A stretch of DNA of 64,000 nt, from NCBI GenBank assembly GCA_977016875.1, contig CDRNST010000104.1:1550001-1614000 (forward strand), written 5' to 3'. Every line of letters begins with the position of its first letter. Position 1 is the first letter of the stretch. A program made the translations under genes and the position numbers. Positions 3,100 through 58,124 of the stretch are shown piece after piece. Below the pieces are notes generated by a model. It was not told the origin of the DNA. It worked only from the letters and a program-made list of their open reading frames with translations, and made no database searches. The DNA is from Pavona decussata (taxonomy: Eukaryota).

Positions 3100-5630
3100 T
3101 GTGGGTTATTCTACCCTCCCACCACTGTCACCTTTTTAGTCATGTCAGTAGTACATCATGTCCTCATTTCGCCTTTTTCTAATGCCTCTTTCTCTGCGGC
3201 TTTGAATTTCAGTTGCTTCAACATCAATATATTCGACATGCTTGCTTTCAACAGGGGACTCTGCTTGCAGCTGGTCATTCTGTTCTTGGTTTTCAGATTC
3301 TACAAACTCTGTAACTGTACAAGCGGTTGGGGTTTGGGGCCTTATAGAGTTCAGTATTCGTAAGTAGCACTTGTCTGTTAAGTGTATAATATCATTATTG
3401 TCTCGAGTATGTCATTGTCACTCAAAGGAAACAGAATTCCTTTCTTTAATACTCTTCTGGATCCTACGGCCACAAAGCAGCCAAATTGTTTATCTGTCGT
3501 CTCAGTAAAGGAGTACCACAGAACATTGATTTTGGTCTCATTGGGGTTATCAAATACATCTGATCCCGTCATAGTAATTTAGAAATTTGCTCTTGGGATG
3601 TCATCTGGAGCAAGCATATCGTATCCCGGCTTGACTACGGGACGACTCCCTTTTGAAACAGGACTTGGACAGGATGATGCTCCCTGTTTACAGCTTCTAC
3701 TACATTTTCTTCTCCACACTGTTCTCTTTCAAAGTGCATTCTGGAACTGGTTACTTCTGTCTGACTCATCCCCTCTGCATTGGCAAATGATGGAAGGGTG
3801 CCAGCGTCATATTCACTGATATCTCTGACAGACCGTTGCCGAACGCCACCACAATACTGCCTCTGCTATTCCTGCAGTTCCTGTAAATCTTCAGGTGGGA
3901 TGGGGGCTGTTGTTGGTGGTTTGACAACCGCCAATAGTCTTGTTGTTATTGTTGTTGTTGACAGGCCATTGGATAGCGCACTGAAGGTGTTAGGTCTGGA
4001 TAGTGGGCTTTTTTGGGTGTGAGGTAAAGGAAGGATGCATGTGTCATCCTCTTTACTGTCTCCTGTATTGTGGGCATCAGCAGCTGGGCATATTGCAGCA
4101 TGTACGGCATGGCATGACGACCACACACATTCGAAAAAAATTGTTCAATCACAAGGGTCAGGATTGAAAGAGACCTAAATGCTTGTTCGTAATCTGCAGT
4201 TAACTCGTGCTCGTCTACATTGCTAAATAGATCCTTCAGTTCCTTCAGGGTGTCAGTGACCCAGGTCACAGCCTCCACGGTTATGTAAGCTGTGAGCCAT
4301 GTGGCCCTTCAAAGTTTAGAGTTGGGTTCTGAACGTGTTCCCTGATATTGCTGACAAGTTCATTGAAGTATTGCTGGACCTTGGCCATGTTGGTGATAAC
4401 CTCGACAAGTCCAACTTGCCTAGTGTACCCGTATTTGGTCTTGTCAGAATGTACAGAAAACACCTGAAACATCTTTTGGATGTTTTTCAAGTATGAAGCC
4501 AATGCGGATGTTGGAGTGATGATTCTCAGAGTTTGTGATCCTGTGTCACACACATACACTGTATGCCCCTTAGTTGCCAAGCCAGTGGGTTGTGCATGAC
4601 TACTTGACGGCGACTTTCCACTTGCTGTCTTCAATTCTCCATTTCCAGAAATTACAGTGACCTCACCGTTGGGTGTTAGCTGTTTGACCAGGTTTCGTTT
4701 CCTGTCCGTGAAGATCAGATTCAGGCCATCAACGGCTACGCCATGTGTTACGGCACACTGATTGTTGGTTATCTCTTTCTGTGGCACTATACCATCAAGA
4801 CAAAGCTTCGTTTTACCACCAGACTCTTCGTTCAAGTCAGCAACATAGAAACAGCTCTCATGGTATGGCAGTCCATGTGGTAAGCAGTTCATTGGTAAGT
4901 CTTTAATTCGTCGAGCAGTTGCCTGGAAGGCAATACCAGAGATGGTTAGCTCATACACTGACTGATTGTTGGCAGTAAAAAGAAGGTCCAGGCATGAGGC
5001 CAGAACTTTTGGATGGTGAATTTGTGCATTAACAATCTTCAAACGTATAACTAACATTTTCTTGTCCTTTCCTTTATCTCCAACACCATTGTTGACATTG
5101 TTGTCTTCCCTGTGAATTTCCTGTGGTATCGGTGTCATCTGAGGTATTTGTTCTTGATGATCCTCAATCCATCTCTGAAGTTTTTGTCGTAGAGCAGGAC
5201 AACTGTAGTCAGTAAGCTGGGCATCTTTCAGAATAATGCCTTTTTCCTCAGTAAAGGCAAACAATTCACGCTTGCTTATCCTCTTGGGAGAAATAGTTGC
5301 TCTTTGGAAAGATCACAATAGCAGATGCCTCTTGCCTCAGTTACAAATGCAGTTCCATTCATGTAGTGCACGTTGAGCGGGCTTTGAAGATTCTGTGCAA
5401 TAACTTCAACGTTAGCAGGATAATGCAATCGAGCTTTAAGCACCCTGCCTTTGTTGTGGGCGTGCCCTTGATCAAGTACTAAAATGGTACCAAATGGTCC
5501 TACATTGACAGAGGCTGGCCTTTGCACGATTCTCTTTGCATTTCCTCGCCAAACCCAGTAAGGCTTAGGTAAGGGGGTGGCAGTGACCATCGTAACATCT
5601 CTTAGAAGATCGATGACGCCTGGCTGGTAG
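3100..5630 (-). pseudogene. 3' two-thirds of a P-like transposase gene with NHL repeats and a SAP-like domain (divergent homolog of 49872-53262)
   Basis: ORFs 5276-5668, 4281-5264, 3946-4278 and 3866-4126 align colinearly with the second copy: KARLHYPANV/KACLHSPVDK, QPTGLAT..VYVCD/QPIGICT..IHICD, FSVH, GPHG/GPQG, LTLVIEQFFS/MTLDVENCHS, ETVKRMTH..HYP/ESVKRVTH..WYP, VRQRSVR..GTLP/VRQRTVR..GTLP. Stops and frameshifts are present. Confidence 0.75.
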
Positions 5631-6418
5631 ATACAAAGTAATTCTTGAGTATGGTTTATCAATTTCATCCTTGTATCTCTTCAAGGTAAAGGGTTTCTAA
5701 GATCCAGGAAGTGTAAGAACTCAGTTTTTGTCACCGTACCGTAGGTGGTATAATGCTTTGTTACAGCTCTTTATAACATTTTTGTTGAATCGTTTGTGCT
5801 TGCCTACTGCTTTCCCCAGTAAATCGTCGGCAGCAATACACTGTGGGACGGTCAACGGCAGTGTGATTCTTCTCTTTATGCTCAGAACGCCATCCTTTAG
5901 TGTCATGACACCAATGTTGACCTTCACTTCTGAGTTCACATCTGACTTCTTGAGCACTCTAGGTCTCTTAGCAGTTTTCGGGCGTTTACTGCGAAAATAC
6001 TCCTTTCTATCCTTTTCTATGCGAGCTTTGAACCGTGTAAATGTTAATGGCGTTGTCCCACTGCCACTGGTCCTGTTTTACATCAACTGCACTAATGTCT
6101 CTCTTCAAGGCACTATCATTTAGACTTATTGTCTTCCACACTGGTGATAAAACTGTGCTGCTGAGACATTCTGTTCCACAAGAGGAGCAGAACATTTTGA
6201 GGAAACAGAAGTTGTGGATAAGCGCTCGAAAAATCAAGGCAAGATGTAATGGCGGGAGTATGCAGCAGAATAACTGGAATGTGCATGTGCATATTTTCTG
6301 TGGTTTAATATCGAGCAACACTTTTTAAATTTGCAGCAACCTTTATAAATTTGCAGCAACTTTTATAAATTTGGAGCAGCCTTTTTTATTTGTAGCATGT
6401 CCCTTGTGGGCCACCATA
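5630..6418 (-). mobile_element. 5' end of an IS3EU-like element, including the start of its accessory (HECT-family N-terminal) ORF
   Basis: The minus-strand terminus TATGGTGGCCCACAAGGGACATG at 6418 is TAYGG-type, followed by about 21-bp aatttgcagcaac subterminal repeats (6328-6400). The degraded ORF reads MFCSSCG...VKVNIGVM...LPLTV...LPGS.KPFTLKRYKDEIDKPYSRITLYL. Confidence 0.5.
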
Positions 6419-48245: not shown

Positions 48246-49529
48246 TTATCCCTATACTTTATTGGCGTCGTATGCATGGCACCAAGCGCACGTAGACGAG
48301 TAGAAAAAAAAATAAAAATTTTAGAATTCATTTCCGTCGAAATGTTAACCCCATGTATAAACTGTTTTCCGAAAATGAAATACATTTTAGGGTACCAAAC
48401 AAAAAGATGACAATCTGTGGCTCCATCGCGGTGCCAAAACTGTCACAAGTAATTGAATATTCCGCCACTTCACTTCGACATACTTTTTTCGTAGAGTCTC
48501 TTTCACAGACATCAGTTAACAGTCAGGCAATTTGCTTTTGTTGAGGTCTACTGAAAGAAGGTTTTGGTGGGATGTAGTTAGCGCAAAATGGCATTATGAA
48601 CACAATACATGTGCCATAACTACCCTCATCCTTCAGATTTGAAGAATATTGTAGTGCCTCTGTACAGTTGACTTGTGAGGTGGTAGGCGGGGAAAACTAA
48701 TTAAAAATTACTCAACAGGGAAAAGGTGTTGTCCATTCCTAAAAGCTCGCATTCAATTCAAAGTACCACAGCCCACAGTACATTTTTACGAGGAAGCAAA
48801 TGTCATTTCCTTTCCTCTTGGCTTCATTTAAAAGTTCGATGTCTGCGTTTTGTGCAGCTCTTACCAGTGTTGGGTCCATTATAATTGGCATGTTCCTGTG
48901 GAGATCTCGCAATTCATGGCTGGCATTTACGTTCTCGTACTTGAAGTCTTGATTTATTCCAACATTTAGGGCCTTCGCGAGGCTTGGCTGCCCTTCATAT
49001 TGCTGATGCTTTTTGGACAGACTGGTTATCTCTGCTATAAACTGCAGTGATAAAATTTCCCTCCAGATGCTCTGCTAGAGAGCGATGTATAATGAGGAGG
49101 ACATTGGGGGGTTCTGAACACCGCAACACCGCAAAAAATATTGCCGAACACCGCATCACCACAAGTAAAGTCTGTGGAACACTGTCACCGCAATATCTAT
49201 TTTTAGTCTGATGATTTAAGCGTCAGTACAGGATAAAGCCTTCAAGATTTTGCCTTTGTCCTTAAGAAAAGTTGTGAAACAAACATAACGAGGCCAAAGC
49301 TGTAGTTACTCTGCATATGCCTTTTGATGTTGGTTGTTACGTACACTTTGACGCTAGAATACTAGAAGATCTATGAACTTCAGCCGAAAAATTACCGCTG
49401 CCTCGTGCTACAAGAACATTTCCGGAGAGTTGTGTGTTCTGACATTGTCACAGAAAAATACTCCTAGTCTCCTTTCTTGAATATTTAAGTTTCAGGCTTT
49501 AAAACCTTTTAACTAATGGTACTCGGGCA

Positions 49530-49857
49530 ATAGGCCGTATGCATGATCACGTAACATGCCCGAAAGGCAGTATGGTAGTTGTAGTCACACTCAAATCCAA
49601 GATGGCGTCAATAGTGCTAGTAGCGGGGGAAAAAGAAAAAGTACGTAGTATTTGACCTATCTGAAGGCTCAAACAAATACCCTGAGAAGCTACTCGACCG
49701 CCCGGCCACATCAGAACACTTGTCAGCATTTCTGCCATTTAAATTTCCCGCTTCGGGGAAATACAACGCCATATTGGATTCGTGGGTGACTTCAACTACC
49801 ACAATGGACGTTCAAGCCGCAAAAGCATTGTTTTACGTCATTATAGATAAGGTTTAT
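49530..49857. mobile_element. MITE inside the 3' region of the 8-kb element
   Basis: Internal inverted pair ggtagttgtagtcacactcaaatccaagatggcg / cgccatattggattcgtgggtgacttcaactacc, with imperfect outer TIRs. Confidence 0.65.
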
Positions 49858-49871
49858 GAGGATGGAAAAAA

Positions 49872-52800
49872 TTAAAAAAATAGGCGATTATTAAAATGAA
49901 TGGCTCTTCCAAAGCGTGACTTTGCGCCAAGTAAAAATGTCGTGGAGCTTCCAATCTCTTCTTGTAAATAGTCTTCACTTCCGTTGCTGGCCCCTGCATC
50001 ATCCTCATCATTACTTTGGTCATATTCCGTGTCATCTCCCCTTTCATCGATTCTAGCTTCTTCTTCTTCTTCTTCTTCTTCTTCAGTTTCCTCGAAAGAG
50101 ACATTTATAGCCTGTTTGGCACTGATGCAGTGTCGTTGATACATGTACTCAGGTAGAGTGCCATGCTTGGCCATCGTCATCTCCTGGCGCACTGTCCGCT
50201 GTCGCACTGCGGCTCCATACGACGAGGCCCAATCTCGTATAACATCGCAATGTGCCTTTGACATCTCAACAACAGGAAGTGGCTTGATCGAAGGCACCTT
50301 CGAAAATGGAATGGACTCCTCCGGTTTTGGGTACCATGATTTTCTGCTTGTGTGGTAGTAAGCCGCCCAGTGGGTTACCCTTTTGACTGACTCTTTCATT
50401 GTAAGACCAAAAGAACGTGAATATTCCATCATAGACATGTTTGCCTGTTTGATGTGCACGGTGGAATGGCAATTTTCTACATCAAGTGTCATACAACTAA
50501 GGAGATTTGTTGCATCGTAATTGAATGGCTCTAACTTGCTGTACAATCTTTGTAGTCCCCATTCAACAAGTGCAACAGAGGCAACGGTCTTGGCGGAAAC
50601 GTGACCCTGAGGTCCATTAATTGCGCCTGTAATGCCAGTGCTTGTCCTGATATCGTTGGTGTTCCTATCTAGAAGTTCTTTGCATTGGTGGACAAGCGAA
50701 AGCGCTTCATCGGCAGACTTTACAGAGTAGCTTGCTCCTTTACAATGGACAGAAAAAGCGTCACAAAGCTGCCCAATGGAGTTAACAAATTCAGCGCACT
50801 CAACCATCTTCGTACAGATTTTGATATAATTCGTCTGGGCATCACAGATATGAATGACACTTTCTGACTCCGTGCAAATGCCTATTGGCTGTCGAAACCG
50901 ACAGTCCTTTACTTTGCCATCAACATTCCCTTCCTTTCTTTCGCTGCCGGCAAAAAGTTCTACCTCTTCATCTGTCTTGATCTTCCACACCAATGCGTGC
51001 TTTTGGTTACTGAACAGGATTTGTGAGCCAAACCTAGTCAACATGCAAGGTTCATCGTCCAGTTGAACGATAGTTTTACACTGTGCGCTATCAAAAGAAA
51101 CTTTACTGATCCCCTTGCAGTGCGATAAAAAGAGGCTTCCTTCACACAAACACATGCTGTAGATCTTTCGTCACAAATGGTCATACTTAATAACTTCTTG
51201 CATGTTTACCCCTCTCAGTCCGACGCCATCCTTTTGCACTTGAAAAGAGACAATGACTCAGACGTCCTTCCTTGCAGCGTAGATCAGCTCATCATCTCGC
51301 ATAGCATAGCTTCAAAGGAAGGCCGTCTTTCGAAATTCCAGAAATGAACTTCATCATTCTTTACGTTATTCTGATTGTATTTGGATTTGAGGGTTAAAGA
51401 GTAGCGATTCAGCCTTTCCTTTAATTCTGCAACAGTCCCCGTTGGCGTCAGCTTTAGTTTATTTGCAAGGTTGACGAAATCATCTTTTTTCTTTGGCTTG
51501 GTCAAGATGTTAATTGCCCCATCTGCAAACGGGATTGCTTTTATAGGCCCACCGTCAGATGTTAGGAAGATGATCACATCAGCACAGTGGAGATCCCTTG
51601 CTTTAAGTTGCTTCCCGATTGCTGTTATCTTGTCCACAGGACTATGCAGGCAAGCTTTGTGTAGCGTAGGGAAGGAACTCTTCACATCATATGACAGAAA
51701 TGCTATCCATCCGTACCACGGAATGGCAACACTTATTGGCGAAGGAAACATACCCAATTGGTTGTCGGCGGAATATTTGTCTAGCTCTGGGATGATTGTA
51801 TGACAGACGTAGCCAGCCTTTTTCAACTCATTGGTCAACTTAGTGTTGCTAAGAGTGGGAACGGAAGATGGGTCTTGTCTATCTTTATTCTTGACATGAT
51901 CGTTTTTGTGGATAAGCTTTCTGAAGGTTTTTTTTTGTTTTTTTGTATGAGCGGTTTCTCAAAGTACGTATCAAAGCCAAATTACGTTCGCCTTTACATT
52001 TCAGCCACCAGTTTGAAAAAGCAACTTTCATGCTTTTGCCAACATGTGGACAATCTGGCAATACAGACAAAAATCCAAGTTCAGGATCTTCGGTTCCGGC
52101 TTCTAATTTTTCTTAAAGTGTCTCAAGGGCAGCCTTGTTTCCGCTTTCGCAATCACTACAAAGTATTGCCACAACTCGACGACAACAAACAGTGTTTGCT
52201 TCCCGACATGCATCACAGAAGCACAACGAGGGTAAGTGGCTAACCTGTCCCAATAATGTGCATTCATCGCATACTCTTTTCGACTCGTAGCACTCTTCAC
52301 AAAAGCTATTGCAGTTAATTCTTTGGGAGGAGATAATATGACGAGTATGAGGCGCTTGTTGCTGGCATAATTCGCACGCTTGTAGAGTTTTTATGTGTTC
52401 TCTGAAAAGATCTGCCATAGCCTCGCCAGTTTTGCCACTTTGTGTGGTGTAATCAACTGCCACAGGAAGAGAACAAAAGTTATCCAGAGATGTCAAAGAA
52501 GAAACGATTGCTTCGGTAACAATATTTTCCTTGAGATACTCGGGAGAGGGTGATGGATTCTCGTGAATATCGACGGGTTTTTGAGACCAATGTTTTCCTT
52601 TAATCGAGGATCGAACTTAATAGCCGGTTTTAAAGCTGTCCCATCATTGGCAAGAGCACAAGGGATCACTATTAGCTCAGGTGTTTTGATCAACGGTTTA
52701 GCTTGTAAATTTTTTAATAGCTCTAGGTGGCCTAAAGATAGTGGCTTGATAACACCTGATTCTGGTGTGTATTCGTCCTGATACTTGGCACACACCGATT

Positions 52801-55800
52801 CCGAGGGCCCTCCAAGGTTCATTTTTTTATCTCAGATTCAAATGGCTATTTCGGCCATCTCCTAAGTTCATTGGCCCTCTGATGAAGCAGGTTGTGCGTT
52901 TGCCACCAAGGTAGGTGATTGTATTGAAAAATTCCACAACCTCTTGGGCATATTCGTGGAAAAGATTGTACATTATCTCCAACACATCATTCAGATATTT
53001 ATAAAAAATCCTTTCCTTTGATATCTTTCCTCGTTGAAGGAGGTCTTGTAACTTAACGCATACTGGATCCACCTGCTTGATGCCAATATGCACAGTGAAG
53101 AGGTCATCTTCGTCAATACTGTCATCCGACAGCATTTGGTCGACCTCAGTGCACGAGCAAACCCCCACAGAATCATCATCCATGTCTGAGTCAACGAGTT
53201 CCTCGTCAGTTCTGTCATCGTCCTCATAGGAATCCCATTCCCCTCCACTGGAGTCATATGTTCTAGACAAGAATAGTACAATTAAGGTTTTATTTTATCG
53301 TGTCAAGCAATTAAATACAGGACCATACAGTCGTAACAAAAACCAAAAGAATTAACTAAGGGTAATTTGGTCAATCAACAAAAATCGAAGATATTTCAAT
53401 GGCGTAATTGCCTTAAAGTCCTTAAACATAACCTAAAAAACCAACAACGGATTAAACGGCAAGTTTTACAATGAAACGTAAAATATCCATGAAATTACAA
53501 TATTTTGCCATGTCGTTCTATTTTTTCGATACATTTGAGCCGTTAGGAAAATACAGTGATGTGTTTGACAGACACAAAACTATGTTTACTTGTCACAATC
53601 ATCCAGATCTAGGTCCGAATCTCTCCTTGGCCTTTTGGTGTTTTCTCCTTCTCGTTAACTTTCTCTAGAGCTGTTCGTTTAGCCCCATGCATGTCCATCA
53701 GTTTCTGTTGACGCACAGTAGTTGCTGTTTTAGAGCTACACTTGGAGTAATGATCTATGACAACAAGAGACAAAATGAAAGAGGTTAGATAAAAATGTTT
53801 TTAACTCACCGCTTTATTGTTTTTCTACATTTCAACTATAATTATTAAAAGGTTATTTTATTACTACTTTTTGATAGTAAATGCCCACCTGACTCAGCTT
53901 CGTAAATATACATGGCAAATTTTTCGCCTGCATAATGACCATGAAGTTTTATAGAGTTAATAAATGGTTAAAAAAAGCGCAACTGCCGTATTCACGATTC
54001 TTTTTCGAGCCATGTATAGATAAAATAAAACCTATCAGGGGGGTCTTTTGCAACCTGTGTGGGACTTAATCTGGGATTACGTAACATAGCGTAAACAATC
54101 AGTAAAACTGAACTTACGTAGGTCAAAAAAGGCGATTCGTCCTTTCAGATCACTATCGTATCTCAGCTGTATATTGCGTTTGCAAGTGCCACACGTTATC
54201 TTCCATGGCCACTGTACTTCTTTGCCACTTTTCCCTCTTGTTTTCACAACTGCATGTTTGCCACATCTGATCAGTTTACTCCCGCATCTCTTGACCAATT
54301 CTAAACAGTTACGAGAAAGTGTTGATTGTCGAAATAAGCTATTTTCGATAGTATTACCCTCGATGCGATTTCTTTTGTTTTATTCCCCCAGGGCTCGGAG
54401 CCAAGCATGAATTTTTATATAATATATATGATATATTTCCACCATTACCTTCATTCAATTTTGTTTTTTCTTTCTCTGTGAGCTCCACTGGACCCATTGA
54501 AGGTGATATCGATGGTGTAGGCGTTAACGTCTTGCAGGAGCAGCTCTCCTTGATTTCAATTGTTGGACAGTTCTTGGAGAAAACAGTTTTAATAGAATAG
54601 ACAAAAACTGGAAGTGAGAAAAACAAAACAGGAAAAACATTCAGGCATTACAAAATTTATTATTCCTGCAGGTACAAAATCACTTGGTACAAAACTATAC
54701 AGCAACTTTTCGCTATTCCTATATTTTTAGATATACTCGCATATATTTCGCGCACCAGGTTGACAGGTGGGTTTTGTTGAACCCTGGCCGAGAAAAAGCG
54801 CTGTTGTAATAAAAAGGTGCACCCTCAAAGCAAAAAAGGAGTAACTTATGTTGAAATTTCTCTTTGCTTCTTAAAATTGTTGTTCCCTGTTTCAAATAAG
54901 AAAACCAACATAGACAGTGAAGCTCTACCTGCAACTAGACAATTTACGAGATCTAGTAGGACATCGAGAAGTAGTGCCATTACTTATATTCCTAACCGAA
55001 GCAGAACTCTTACTTATCAACGTTCATTTTTCATACGCGCGTGCCGCACATGGAATGTTCTTCCCACTGAGCTACGCACAAGTCACATCTCTTTAGCTTT
55101 ATTCAAAACTTTATTACTTCAATATTATAAAAAGGCTTTGAACTTGTACGACGCTGACGACATTAGAACTTGGAGAACAATCTGTCCTGTATAACACAGC
55201 GAGGTAACAGTCCTGTGTAACACAGCGAGGTCTCTCCTATGCCCGCCAACGTGCTGCTTCTAGCAATTTGGTCTCCCGCCTTGTCTCCTCTAGTTTTATG
55301 CTTACATATTAGTAGCTTTAGTTATTAAGCATTTTTTTTTTATATAAATAATTAACAAGGGATCCACTGTAATTGGCTACGCTGTAGTGGTCTCCCTGCC
55401 TAATTATTATATCTTTGTTTTTTTTTGTTTTTTTTTTGTTTCTATTGTTTGTTTCCATTCTGTTTGTATTTTAGTTAGGCGAAGCTAAATAAATAAATAA
55501 ATAAATAAAAAAAACCTGGTGTAAAAATTATCAGATCAAACATACTTCTTAACAGCATGAAAGAAATATGGTTAAACATACCTATTTAACAGGACCTCTA
55601 TGTTGTCTCCCAAGCCTAACCTTTTGGCTGTTTTCCGTATGCCAGAACGTTCGCTAAATTAAAAAGAACATATTTATGCCATTAGCATAACTGCAGCCTT
55701 ATATAACTAGCTCACTGCCTTCATAAGCTATTGACGGGGTTGACTGGTAAACAATCCTGAATAATGATACAACTCCCGGGTAGGGAAGGGTGGGATAGGA

Positions 55801-56794
55801 ATCGTCCAGTGTTTGGGTATGGGGGGAGGGGGTTTGAATTCCTGACCCTGTTAAGGCCAAAAATAACCTGAAAAGAGTACATTATTTTGGAAAATATCCT
55901 CCCCATAGGGCTTATAAATTATCTGGTCCTGAAAATGATTTCGTGTTGATTGATGACCTGCTAACCTGAATGACGAACCTCTCCAATTTTGTATTGCTCC
56001 AAAATACTAGACGATAGTGTTGTGCTATACCCTTTCTGAGACGTTTTCACACCCTGTTTAAGACACACTTGCTTGAATTATATACTCTATTCAGATCCTG
56101 TTCAGGGCAGAGAGGCCAAATTACATAAACCAGCGGCACGTCCCTGTGTTTACTTTTTAAACTCAGACCAGCCCGCGACTTATTTATTCTAGCCAAAACT
56201 AGTTTTCGCATTACCACGTTGGCTTGAAATTTTACTGTTTCTTTTTTTTTTTTTTTTTTCCTCGGTTATTTCTTTTTTAAATATATAAAAAAATACACAA
56301 GGGCAAGTGCAAAGAGCGGGAGAGTTCACTTTCCTTACCCCTCCCCCCGTCCCTCCCCCGTAGTCTCCCGTGGCCTGTTTATTTCCATTCACGCGCTTGA
56401 TATCAATAGCCATTTGACCCATTTGAGAAAGTAGACAAAAATAGTGATCTAAACAGTGTCTTAAAGGTCCCAGAAGATCAAACGACTGTGGAGTGAGCTT
56501 AGACCGATATTAGATTGACCTCCGTACGACCTTATACAGTTAAGACTAGCTACGATATTCAGATACAGAGACAATGCGTGTAACTTTCCAAATGCATTCT
56601 ACAAACTTCGCGAGTCTCTTTTCCTCCTTGTTTATGGAGCATCGAAATTTGTTTTTCCACCTATAGTTCTCTCCACCTTTGCCCTCCTCATAAAATAAAG
56701 CTACGCAATGAACTACGTATTCAGGATCGACAGGATCAGCTGCATCAGTCACGAGGTTTTCGCTCATCTTGCCTGATGGACCGGACGATGACAT
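49872..56794 (-). pseudogene. Spliced P-element/THAP9-like DDE transposase gene with a C2HC finger, Cys-rich insert, NHL repeats and SAP domain (frameshifted)
   Basis: Exons are about 56794-56583 (tentative), about 54575-54449, 54300-54118, 53754-53590 and 53262-49872. The last three introns have phase-compatible GT-AG junctions. Motifs: GGPSES..ESGVI..CALANDGTALKP..FD (D1), ILCSDCESGN (D2), PDCPHVGK (DxxH), TLDVENCHS (E), SAP-like LANKLKLTPTGTVAELKERL, NHL-like FAGSERKEGNVDG...FRQPIGIC. Confidence 0.8.
54905..55512 (+). mobile_element. 3' end of a CR1/L2-type LINE inserted in an intron of the 8-kb element
   Basis: RSRTLTYQRSFFIRACRTWNVLPTELR...FKTLL followed by an (AAAT)n/poly-A tail at 55487-55514. 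Confidence 0.75.
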
Positions 56795-58124
56795 GTGGTG
56801 ATCCGGGTCACGAAGGTCACGTTGCTTATCAAGTTACTTAATATAAATGAACAACAGGTGTAGGATTAGTGACGGGCAGCGTATTTAATATTAACTAGAG
56901 AGTATTAGAGAACCCTTAGCGTGTATTTTATTTCAAATCAAACATGATGGGGGCCAAATTTAGAACTGACAAGCATCAAAATGGAAACTGTGACACCGCA
57001 GACAATTTCGTTTCATCGAACACCGCAGACTTAAAGACGCAAACATCGCACACCGTGACGTTTAAGAATACCGCAACACCGCAAGCTGAGATTTTATTCA
57101 CCGCACAAAAAAATACCTAACACCGCAAATCCCCAATGTCCCCCTCTATAATCTTCGTGGGTTGTCCACATGCTCTTTTTTTGCCATCCTGGGGCAGCAC
57201 TTGCGCTTGCAGCAAGGGAAGACGCTTTACGTGTCCAGCAATAGTGTCCGTGTAACTGTTGAACCATAGCCCAGTTTTAACTTGGAACCGAATGAGAAGC
57301 CTGTATCTATCAGCGATGTGGTGTTATCTTCGCTTAACAGCCAAAATCTGTGATTTTTCACCAAACAGCTATGTGATGTGGAATATCTCTTTCAACACGC
57401 ATGTCCTGTCTCTGCCATTCAACTGAACCACATTTGGTGTACTGGAGATGGGCTTTAAGAGATTTTAAAGATAGTCTTTTTTCTTGGTACTCATTCGCCA
57501 TTTAAAAATCAATTTGTTTTACGGGTGCTTGGTGCAGTTTCGGCTCTGCGCTTGTCAGGAGCTTGTTTTTCTGGTCACCTTCCCGTCTCCTTCGGGCACC
57601 ATTTTTACAGCCACTGGAGTTCTCGTGCATGGACCAATGTCTTCCATGCTTTCGGATCTTACTTCCAGGTCCTGGATAAAGAAAGGTATGAAATCGTACT
57701 TTATTTCATATCACATACTTGTACATAAGGTACGAGTTTACGCTTTTTGTCTAAACATGCATATTAATACGTATAAAATTTAGATAATTTGATTGTCTGT
57801 CCCTAAACTTGTTTGCATGTTTTTGATAAGAGTAGTTATTGTAAATACTTATTGAAAGGCATTTAACTTCACAGCAAGATGGAGACAGTTGGTTCCAAAA
57901 AAATCTCATATTTTCAAATAATACAATCATAGAAGATACTTGCAAGTAATCTCTTTCATGTCATTAAACTAAACTATTGCCATTTTGCCATCAATGATAA
58001 ATGGCTCTTTTTTGGCTAGTTGTTTGTAATTAATTTTACCAAGTTGTCACTGTCATTGCAATTCTGCCTGGCTTTTCTAAGAATACCCTCCTTAAGCGTC
58101 ATCAATCTTGTTTCCACTCTCCAC

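Follow-up and report, generated by a model that had tools for sequence, protein, structure and literature searches.

Eukaryotic cut-and-paste transposons are divided into only about twenty recognised superfamilies, which are defined by the length of the target-site duplication (TSD), the termini, and the fold of the transposase. Here we ask where among them, if anywhere, an insertion of 8053 bp in the genome of Pavona decussata belongs. The insertion occupies positions 49094-57146 of a 64-kb stretch of DNA (contig C104:1550001-1614000; hereafter the window), and genome-wide searches were made in the 602-Mb assembly. An initial annotation, made from the sequence of the window alone, had described a P-like transposase gene inside terminal inverted repeats (TIRs) that begin with GAGG. 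Our analysis indicates that the insertion is very probably a defunct, formerly autonomous member of a family of cut-and-paste (DDE) DNA transposons spread across animals, a family whose transposase combines a P-type split RNase H-like core with a propeller at the insertion-domain site. The family, hereafter the GAGG family, is characterised by 5'-GAGG termini, TIRs of 13-16 bp, 6-bp TSDs without sequence specificity, and same-direction arrays of 7-9-bp subterminal repeats.

The boundaries annotated for the element, namely a bounded 8053-bp unit with 15/16-matching TIRs and an exact TATAAT duplication, were recovered when the sequence was read again (Table 1). The junctions were ...gagcgatg TATAAT followed by GAGGAGGACATTGGGG on the left and CCCCAATGTCCCCCTC followed by TATAAT cttcgtgg... 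on the right. The flanks of the element belong to a three-copy repeat, the other two copies of which, on contigs C175 and C85, are uninterrupted. In both of them the left flank runs directly into the right flank, the two sharing exactly six bases, and a single 6-mer (TATAAT or TATAGT) stands exactly at the junction. An empty site had been predicted by the initial annotation, and the uninterrupted paralogous copies, reading ...GAGCGATG TATAAT CTTCGTGG..., supplied it; the two paralogous empty sites, ...GAGCGATG TATAAT CTTCGTGGGTTGTCC... and ...GAGCGATG TATAGT CTTCATGG..., back the boundaries of the unit. The flanking host repeat comprises 48794-49093 and 57147-57446 in the window, L076 (C175), and L077 (C85), with copies 80-87% identical.

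A single minus-strand multi-exon gene lies between these ends. The first ATG (56794) and the stop codon (49872-49874) lie 352 bp inside the right end and 778 bp inside the left end, respectively, in agreement with the distances of about 350 and 780 bp given before. The coding pieces of the window were searched separately, alignments and folding used intact database relatives, and the exon borders are putative. Four upstream coding blocks (56794-56549, about 54647-54357, 54380-54080, and 53800-53612) matched the N-termini of the Oculina and Clytia proteins, and the last of these blocks also had a 79%-class DNA match in the copy on contig C45. The main coding block was matched by the relative P0003 (tblastn) at 53279-51909, 51943-51299, and 51344-49881, with alternating frames. 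Compared with intact relatives, it contained frameshifts near 52832, 52590, 51945, and 51295, and stops at 52113-52115 and at two places between 51290 and 51170. With at least four frameshifts and at least three stops in total, the description of the window copy as decayed was borne out. The C45 relative has an uninterrupted open reading frame (ORF) of 823 amino acids (aa) across the stretch that matches the main coding block of the window.

Ends of the family were found at many other places in the P. decussata genome (at least 20 left and at least 30 right ends), and the TIR pattern GAGGGGGACATKGGGG, with at most one mismatch, occurred 113 times, compared with 31 times for the reversed control. 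Elements with paired ends span about 1.2 kb (gene-less) to about 8 kb. All seven independent end pairs had perfect 6-bp TSDs (TATAAT, ATTGAG, CTAAAA, CGCAAG, TTTTTG, CAAAAG, and CTCAGA). More than 100 places in the genome matched the 427-aa C-terminal piece of the protein, mostly broken and down to 25% identity, and several matches kept open frames of 1100-1200 aa. The copy on C8, 5.4 kb long and 93-96% identical to the window copy, is an internal-deletion derivative, since it lacks window 51524-53980. The gene is also present in the copies on C96 and C45, where its protein is 66-80% identical; for C45 only the left end was found. The initial annotation had allowed that the gene might be a nested passenger, with a different transposase in other copies that have these TIRs. 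This did not turn out to be the case: the gene is not a passenger because the larger copies (C8, C96, and C45, the last with its left end only) hold the same gene and no other transposase. A second, distant family member was present in the window itself at 3997-5734 on the minus strand (tblastn with P0003 and P0031), where the propeller and post-propeller parts were matched at 23-43% identity. On contig C185, a ~1.2-kb element with identical flanks (TSD TTTTTG) occurred three times (~840346-841580, 1034602-1035819, and 1154956-1156115), and the identical flanks point to segmental duplication after insertion.

Database relatives of the protein were identified in Desmophyllum, Exaiptasia, Oculina, Paramuricea, and Clytia, and a profile search added Branchiostoma, Priapulus, and Mytilus. 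The database relatives are all annotated as hypothetical, and no Pfam domain of the family's own other than SAP was found among them, two apparent chimeras carrying unrelated domains. In the ENA assembly ERZ26692694 (P0059 family, about 34% identical), an identical intact protein of 1159 aa was encoded on eight contigs. Four of its loci (L085-L088) share a common 6.35-kb unit that is 99.9% identical and has the termini GAGGGGGGGCAAGGG at both ends; three copies have the TSDs GGTAAA, AAAACA, and ACCTTC, and the fourth (L088) has unlike flanks, possibly owing to recombination between copies. The 99.9% identity between these loci implies recent transposition and suggests, as far as sequence identity can tell, that this family moved very recently. 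Complete elements were also delimited in the ENA assembly ERZ25067899 (P0064; element L089, 5119-11977; TIR 16/16 GAGGGTCTGGATGGGG; TSD CAAAAA), in Clytia hemisphaerica (P0061; L090, 5902-18710; TIR 16/16 GAGGCCCCCCCAGCGG; TSD CCTAAT), and in Branchiostoma belcheri (P0376; L091, 9507-18200; TIR 13/16 GAGGGCCTGCAAG; TSD TTATAT). When all 256 four-base starts were scanned, GAGG was the sole start that gave a perfect TIR together with a TSD. For the contig of P0007 (L084), no family TIR was found at up to three mismatches, the best candidate matching at 12/16. A TSD of 6 bp was present in six of the seven element copies from other assemblies and species (L085-L091); together with the seven of seven pairs in the P. 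decussata genome and the two paralogous empty sites, the TSD length annotated for the window copy is consistent across the lineages examined. The 13 different TSD sequences and the unrelated flanks reveal no target sequence specificity. One of the ERZ26692694 copies, L087, has an internal deletion of about 800 bp. A full-length member of 1167 aa (P0348) is filed under the name 'MAG: hypothetical protein [Sedimenticola sp.]'; since the family is otherwise distributed in animals, the probable explanation is that animal DNA was binned into a bacterial metagenome-assembled genome (MAG).

The ends of the element also carry subterminal repeats. Nine of the ten copies of CACCGCA in the window (both strands counted) were located within 207 bp of the element ends; all nine were on the plus strand and none on the minus strand, and the 7.6-kb interior of the element contained no copy. 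Outside the window, subterminal repeats were read in L085, L089, and L090, each of which has its own short repeat of the CGTGA or AGTGTTA type in the same direction at both ends. As the repeats are oriented alike at both ends, the two ends are unlike each other when read inward from the TIRs.

The intact protein of the family is about 1100-1400 aa long and contains an N-terminal CxxC...HxxxC finger, a P-like split core, a 10-Cys cluster, and an NHL propeller with SAP. In an alignment of 27 full-length sequences (residues numbered as in P0003), the invariant or nearly invariant positions were LGGPS, D228 in NDGTALKP, ten Cys within 321-384, D395 in DCExGNK, P427, D428, H431, and K434 in LPDxPHVGKS, N442, W443, D486 and R487 in NKDRQD, E955 in LDVENxHS, and K986. 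The motifs quoted in the initial annotation (GGPSES, DGTALKP, CSD..N, DxxH, VEN, and CGTC..HYSKC) were all present, and all except the finger stand at invariant or nearly invariant columns of this alignment. The finger, CxxC-x(19-23)-HxxxC, was conserved only in the two longer N-termini, those of Oculina (P0031) and Clytia (P0061). No match to THAP (PF05485) was detected in these two N-termini or in the full-length members, as expected from the earlier statement that a finger stands in place of THAP. Pfam searches gave only sub-threshold NHL, and a sequence-profile search of the PDB returned only NHL propellers plus a weak match between the N-terminal part of ERI1 and the SAP-like stretch. Some family members carry Pfam SAP at a helical pair (618-656).

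The full-length structural model had a predicted local distance difference test (pLDDT) score of 75, and above 85 over residues 180-990. It has an alpha/beta core (218-452) into which the Cys cluster is inserted, helices at 454-506, the propeller with the helical pair 618-656 looped out of it, and helices at 846-1041 that carry E955. Fold searches with this model returned propellers and were uninformative on the core; because propellers filled the match list, the core was folded separately (P0003:165-512, pLDDT 80). P element transposase or THAP9 ranked first in three structure searches of the core, performed with Foldseek, with VIA-align, a method independent of Foldseek, and in the ESM Atlas. 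In the Foldseek search against the PDB, the best matches were 6p5a_A (E 1.1e-5) and 6pe2_A (E 2.6e-5; prob 1.0), and lower classes included HzTransib (5e-2), RAG (0.17), ISCth4 (0.56), and Hermes (0.86). In the ESM Atlas shape search, seven of the ten rows shown were THAP9/P clusters (PF21787, PF21788, PF21789) and the other three were unnamed, with template modelling (TM) scores by query of up to 0.52 over 245 residues. By these structure searches, a split RNase H fold of P type is present. The GTP-binding domain (PF21788) had no Pfam match in the long ORFs of the P. decussata genome copies or in the full-length relatives, and the position of the insertion domain is filled by helices, the NHL propeller, and SAP. 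A post-propeller helix can be aligned to the terminal TxxF..FDxLN segment of the insertion domain of P, so that part of this domain may survive as a remnant in the GAGG family.

Profile comparison with hhalign placed the catalytic motifs in the same register. The family profile was compared with four P proteins of the same genome (P 0.068) and with 33 diverse P/THAP9 proteins (P 0.071). Against the P/THAP9 set, the N-core alone gave P 0.034 and a score of 25.8, colinear over the first and second Asp and DxxH, and the post-propeller part gave P 0.014 and a score of 26.7 over the TxxF...FDxLN and E motifs. All alignments were in the expected register, and the regional ones were successive on the P profile (columns 422-582 and 660-806). 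Specifically, NDGTALKPAIEFD was placed on HDEMKIKSDLVYD, VLVLxTDCESGNKxAF on KVLxxxCDGASPNRKFF (the Cys cluster being passed over as an insertion), LPDxPHVGKSLKASFANW on ISDVPHLLKTTRNCxENS, TAxFLxxLGxLYxAFSV on TxxFIxxMNxFFDCLNV, and LDVENLHS on QDPLEQFFG. Column-shuffled and reversed P profiles served as the null. With the N-core, shuffled profiles scored 17.4 +/- 3.8 and at most 33.1, the reversed profile scored 16.0, and the real score lay 2.2 standard deviations (SD) above the shuffle null. With the post-propeller part, the shuffled scores were 16.4 +/- 2.9 and at most 25.2, the reversed score was 13.9, and the real score lay 3.5 SD above the shuffle null. The P-like reading of the initial annotation was thus upheld by the first rank of P/THAP9 in the three structure searches and by the colinearity of the profile alignments over the catalytic motifs, with weak sequence significance.

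Several observations weigh against a P-type transposon family. The sequence comparison with P was nowhere significant (hhalign probability at most 3%), and the N-core score was beaten by one of the 40 shuffles. No transposase match was obtained in Pfam at E up to 1 for the eight ORF pieces of the window, the long ORFs of relatives in its own genome, or the full-length database relatives. The structural match to P had a root-mean-square deviation (rmsd) of 9-11 A and a TM score of 0.35, values that imply a shared fold and topology and not close kinship. The union of D228, D395, and E955 in one putative active site is inferred from their invariance and their alignment to P. As read from its frames, the window copy is unable to encode a working enzyme. 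Three contig sets from the same organism, putatively of RNA, did not cover the coding blocks except for one 155-bp contig at 54029-54183, and showed no splice joints. One of the four ERZ26692694 copies (L088) has no matching TSD. Further, several superfamilies, among them Dada, Kolobok, and eukaryotic MULE, have to our knowledge no solved structure, and any of them could be closer than P. We take the fold and the order of the motifs to be those of the P type, the sequences having drifted too far apart for routine searches to detect.

The likenesses to P/THAP9 comprise the split RNase H-like DDE core, the motif order (LPS-like, D, D, DxxH...K...N, TxxF...FDxLN-like, and E in an xxLExxF-like helix), the best structural match in the PDB and the ESM Atlas (6P5A, 6PE2; PF21787, PF21788, PF21789), a large domain inserted before the catalytic Glu, and an acidic C-terminus. 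P is also resembled in the binding-site-like repeats inside short TIRs, the unlike ends, and the internally deleted non-autonomous derivatives. The termini of the P element start with CATG, and its transposase has 751 aa. By comparison, the proteins of the GAGG family are about 1100-1400 aa long, have an extra 10-Cys cluster between alpha-1 and beta-4, and show no significant sequence similarity to P; recognisable P/THAP9 sequence homology (PF21787, PF21789, PF12017) was not found in the family. The P element has an 8-bp TSD and 31-bp TIRs, and the GTP-binding domain of its transposase positions the transposon ends (PMC7776569). In contrast to P, the GAGG family has a TSD of 6 bp instead of 8 bp (7-8 bp), GAGG TIRs of 13-16 bp in all lineages examined instead of CA-initial TIRs of 31 bp, a CxxC...HxxxC finger instead of a THAP domain, and, at the site where P has its insertion domain, an NHL propeller plus SAP that show no match to the GTP-binding domain. 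Canonical P-like elements coexist in the P. decussata genome, with 27 matches to PF21787, none of them at loci of the GAGG family. Canonical P/THAP9-like genes (PF21787, PF21788, PF21789) include C58:1993711-1994145, C251:1510986-1511432, and C78:2682435-2682848 among L078-L083, and some of these loci have open frames of 578-693 aa.

The chances seem to us evenly balanced that the GAGG family constitutes an undescribed superfamily-level lineage, sister to P, in Cnidaria, Mollusca, Priapulida, and Cephalochordata, recently mobile in at least one assembly and defined by GAGG termini, 6-bp TSDs, same-orientation repeats, and NHL and SAP replacing the GTP-binding domain. A full-text literature search found no description of such an element, novelty being judged without comparison with Repbase or Dfam. 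The initial annotation had held that the element fits no recognised superfamily. This holds insofar as its combination of TSD, termini, and domains departs from those of P, hAT, MULE, Dada, and Kolobok; it is open to qualification insofar as superfamilies without solved structures may be closer.

That the family is a member or sister of such a structure-less superfamily (Dada, Kolobok, or eukaryotic MULE), and that the match to P reflects the common ancestry of the hAT/P/Kolobok/MuDR/Dada group, appears unlikely. The weak sequence signal to P and the three unnamed clusters among the ten Atlas rows shown are consistent with it, and Dada has a 6-7-bp TSD, a DxxH motif, and zinc fingers and has been placed near MuDR, hAT, P, and Kolobok (PMC3706591). 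The GAGG family further shares with Dada a DDE core containing DxxH, a multi-exon gene, element lengths of 5-11 kb, and an occurrence in aquatic invertebrates. However, Dada elements are without TIRs and insert at fixed sites in snRNA (U6, U1) or tRNA genes (PMC3706591), whereas the GAGG family has clear TIRs and 13 unrelated targets. The distances between the catalytic residues also differ (D-D 68 and D-E 176 aa in Dada; 167 and 560 aa in the GAGG family), Dada has no propeller and no SAP, and in a string search of the published Dada alignment four of six conserved motif strings were absent and two (GGPS and SGNK) occurred once each in unrelated context. Kolobok elements duplicate TTAA and carry THAP in many members (PMC9587614), in contrast to the varied 6-bp TSDs and the lack of THAP in the GAGG family, a comparison made by description only. 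KolobokP, with long terminal direct repeats and a His-Me nuclease, was rejected on architecture. MULE/MuDR elements have TSDs of 8-10 bp, compared with 6 bp in the GAGG family. The MULE model PF10551 had 71 genome matches, none at GAGG-family loci, and the IS256-type ISCth4 reached a Foldseek E of only 0.56.

A divergent member of the hAT superfamily with a 6-bp TSD is very unlikely. With hAT (Hermes, 2BW3) the family has in common a split RNase H fold, a short TIR, a C/DxxH motif, here DxxH after the second Asp, a large insertion domain between the second D and E, and subterminal repeats, which in hAT are bound by an N-terminal zinc finger; in addition, some hAT groups are reported to have TSDs of 5-6 bp. 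However, the typical TSD of hAT is 8 bp, and hAT termini are YARNG, not GAGG. No hAT dimerisation domain (PF05699) was detected in any member, and the 150 genome matches to this domain were all outside GAGG-family loci. Hermes was matched by Foldseek at E 0.86, compared with 1e-5 for P, and was outside the VIA-align top 50, while the neighbours in the ESM Atlas were P/THAP9 clusters. At the level of Pfam and fold, hAT and MULE are thus excluded. Finally, it is scarcely credible that the NHL/SAP protein derives from a host gene that was captured or domesticated and travels as a passenger, mobilised by a transposase encoded elsewhere: NHL and SAP are ordinary cellular domains and no Pfam transposase domain was recognised, but the protein is the product of the sole conserved gene between the TIRs in ERZ26692694, ERZ25067899, Clytia, and amphioxus, has more than 100 mostly broken matches in the genome, and has an RNase H-like core in which D, D, E, and DxxH are invariant and whose best match is a transposase, and the shorter derivatives are internal deletions of the same gene.

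For the GAGG family as a P-type transposon family, the following mechanism can be proposed. The CxxC...HxxxC finger may bind the subterminal repeats, and the two unlike ends of the element would be paired. D228, D395, and E955, as judged from their invariance and their alignment to P, would cut at the GAGG termini, and the same residues would join the ends to the target with a 6-bp stagger, which corresponds to the observed TSD. The propeller and SAP might take over the task of positioning DNA that the insertion domain has in P, or might add to it. Internally deleted copies and the ~1.2-kb elements with the same ends are presumably mobilised in trans.

A P fold with a 6-bp instead of an 8-bp stagger bears on how the geometry of target joining is set, and a P-fold lineage with another insertion domain bears on whether GTP dependence is ancestral in P-type enzymes. 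The propeller in the slot of the insertion domain bears on how readily DDE enzymes accept new modules, and recalls RAG2 beside RAG1. The likeness to RAG1-RAG2 and Transib-ProtoRAG is one of analogy only and consists in a DDE recombinase, a six-bladed beta-propeller, and a zinc-binding module in the catalytic region; if the proposed architecture is true, the GAGG-family protein would be a single-chain counterpart of an arrangement of DDE recombinase plus propeller otherwise known from RAG1-RAG2. Hundreds of 'hypothetical proteins' of cnidarians, molluscs, and amphioxus would gain an annotation. Moreover, the near-identical intact copies encoding the 1159-aa protein on eight contigs represent a candidate active element.

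Table 1. Features of the GAGG-family element and its surroundings, in window coordinates.
Feature	Position	Strand	Remark
Left target-site duplication, TATAAT	49088-49093	.	Single copy kept at paralogous empty sites
Left TIR, GAGGAGGACATTGGGG	49094-49109	+	Paired with right arm, 15/16; family consensus GAGGGGGACATKGGGG
Left subterminal array, four CACCGCA at 49119, 49127, 49149, 49186	49115-49200	+	
Main coding block of transposase pseudogene	49875-53294	-	Single long exon in intact relatives
LDVENCHS, inferred catalytic Glu E955	50463-50486	-	E invariant; aligned by hhalign onto QDPLExxFG of P/THAP9
Six-bladed NHL beta-propeller, approximate limits	50700-51840	-	At insertion-domain position of split RNase H fold
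SAP helix pair LTPTGTVAELKERLNRY, looped out of propeller	51401-51451	-	
LPDCPHVGKS, DxxH motif	52032-52061	-	Aligned to SDxPHLLKT of P/THAP9
SDCESGNK, inferred second catalytic Asp D395	52134-52157	-	Aligned to CDGASPNR of P/THAP9
10-Cys cluster between helix alpha-1 and strand beta-4 of RNase H-like core	52170-52385	-	Skipped by hhalign as insert relative to P
ANDGTALKP, inferred first catalytic Asp D228	52625-52651	-	Invariant in 27; aligned by hhalign onto DE(M/V)xIK Asp of P/THAP9
Upstream coding block with DHYSKC, second half of CxxC...HxxxC finger	53612-53800	-	Aligned to Oculina and Clytia N-termini
Upstream coding blocks, including WPWKITCGTCK (54179-54211), first zinc-finger half	54080-54647	-	tblastn with P0031 and P0061, and family alignment
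Nested foreign insertion, retroposon-like tail ending in (AAAT)n, 610 bp	54880-55489	+	Gap in C8 alignment
First coding block, MSSSGPSG...VHCVALFYEEGKGG...	56549-56794	-	Matches Oculina P0031 N-terminus
Right subterminal array, CACCGCA at 56994, 57021, 57077, 57099, 57121	56990-57130	+	Orientation as at left end
Right TIR, reverse complement GAGGGGGACATTGGGG	57131-57146	-	15/16 against left arm
Right target-site duplication, TATAAT	57147-57152	.	Exact match to left copy

The retroposon-like tail is foreign to the element proper and is missing from the C8 copy. An open frame within it contains ...SFFIRACRTWNVLPTELR.... In the DNA contigs, a contig depth in the thousands was reached over 54830-55410 only, and most of the coverage by the RNA sets falls there too. 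In addition, a 41-nt inverted repeat (49568-49608 and 49766-49806; 83% complementary, arms 157 nt apart) is located between the stop codon and the left end, and might form a hairpin or represent a small nested element.

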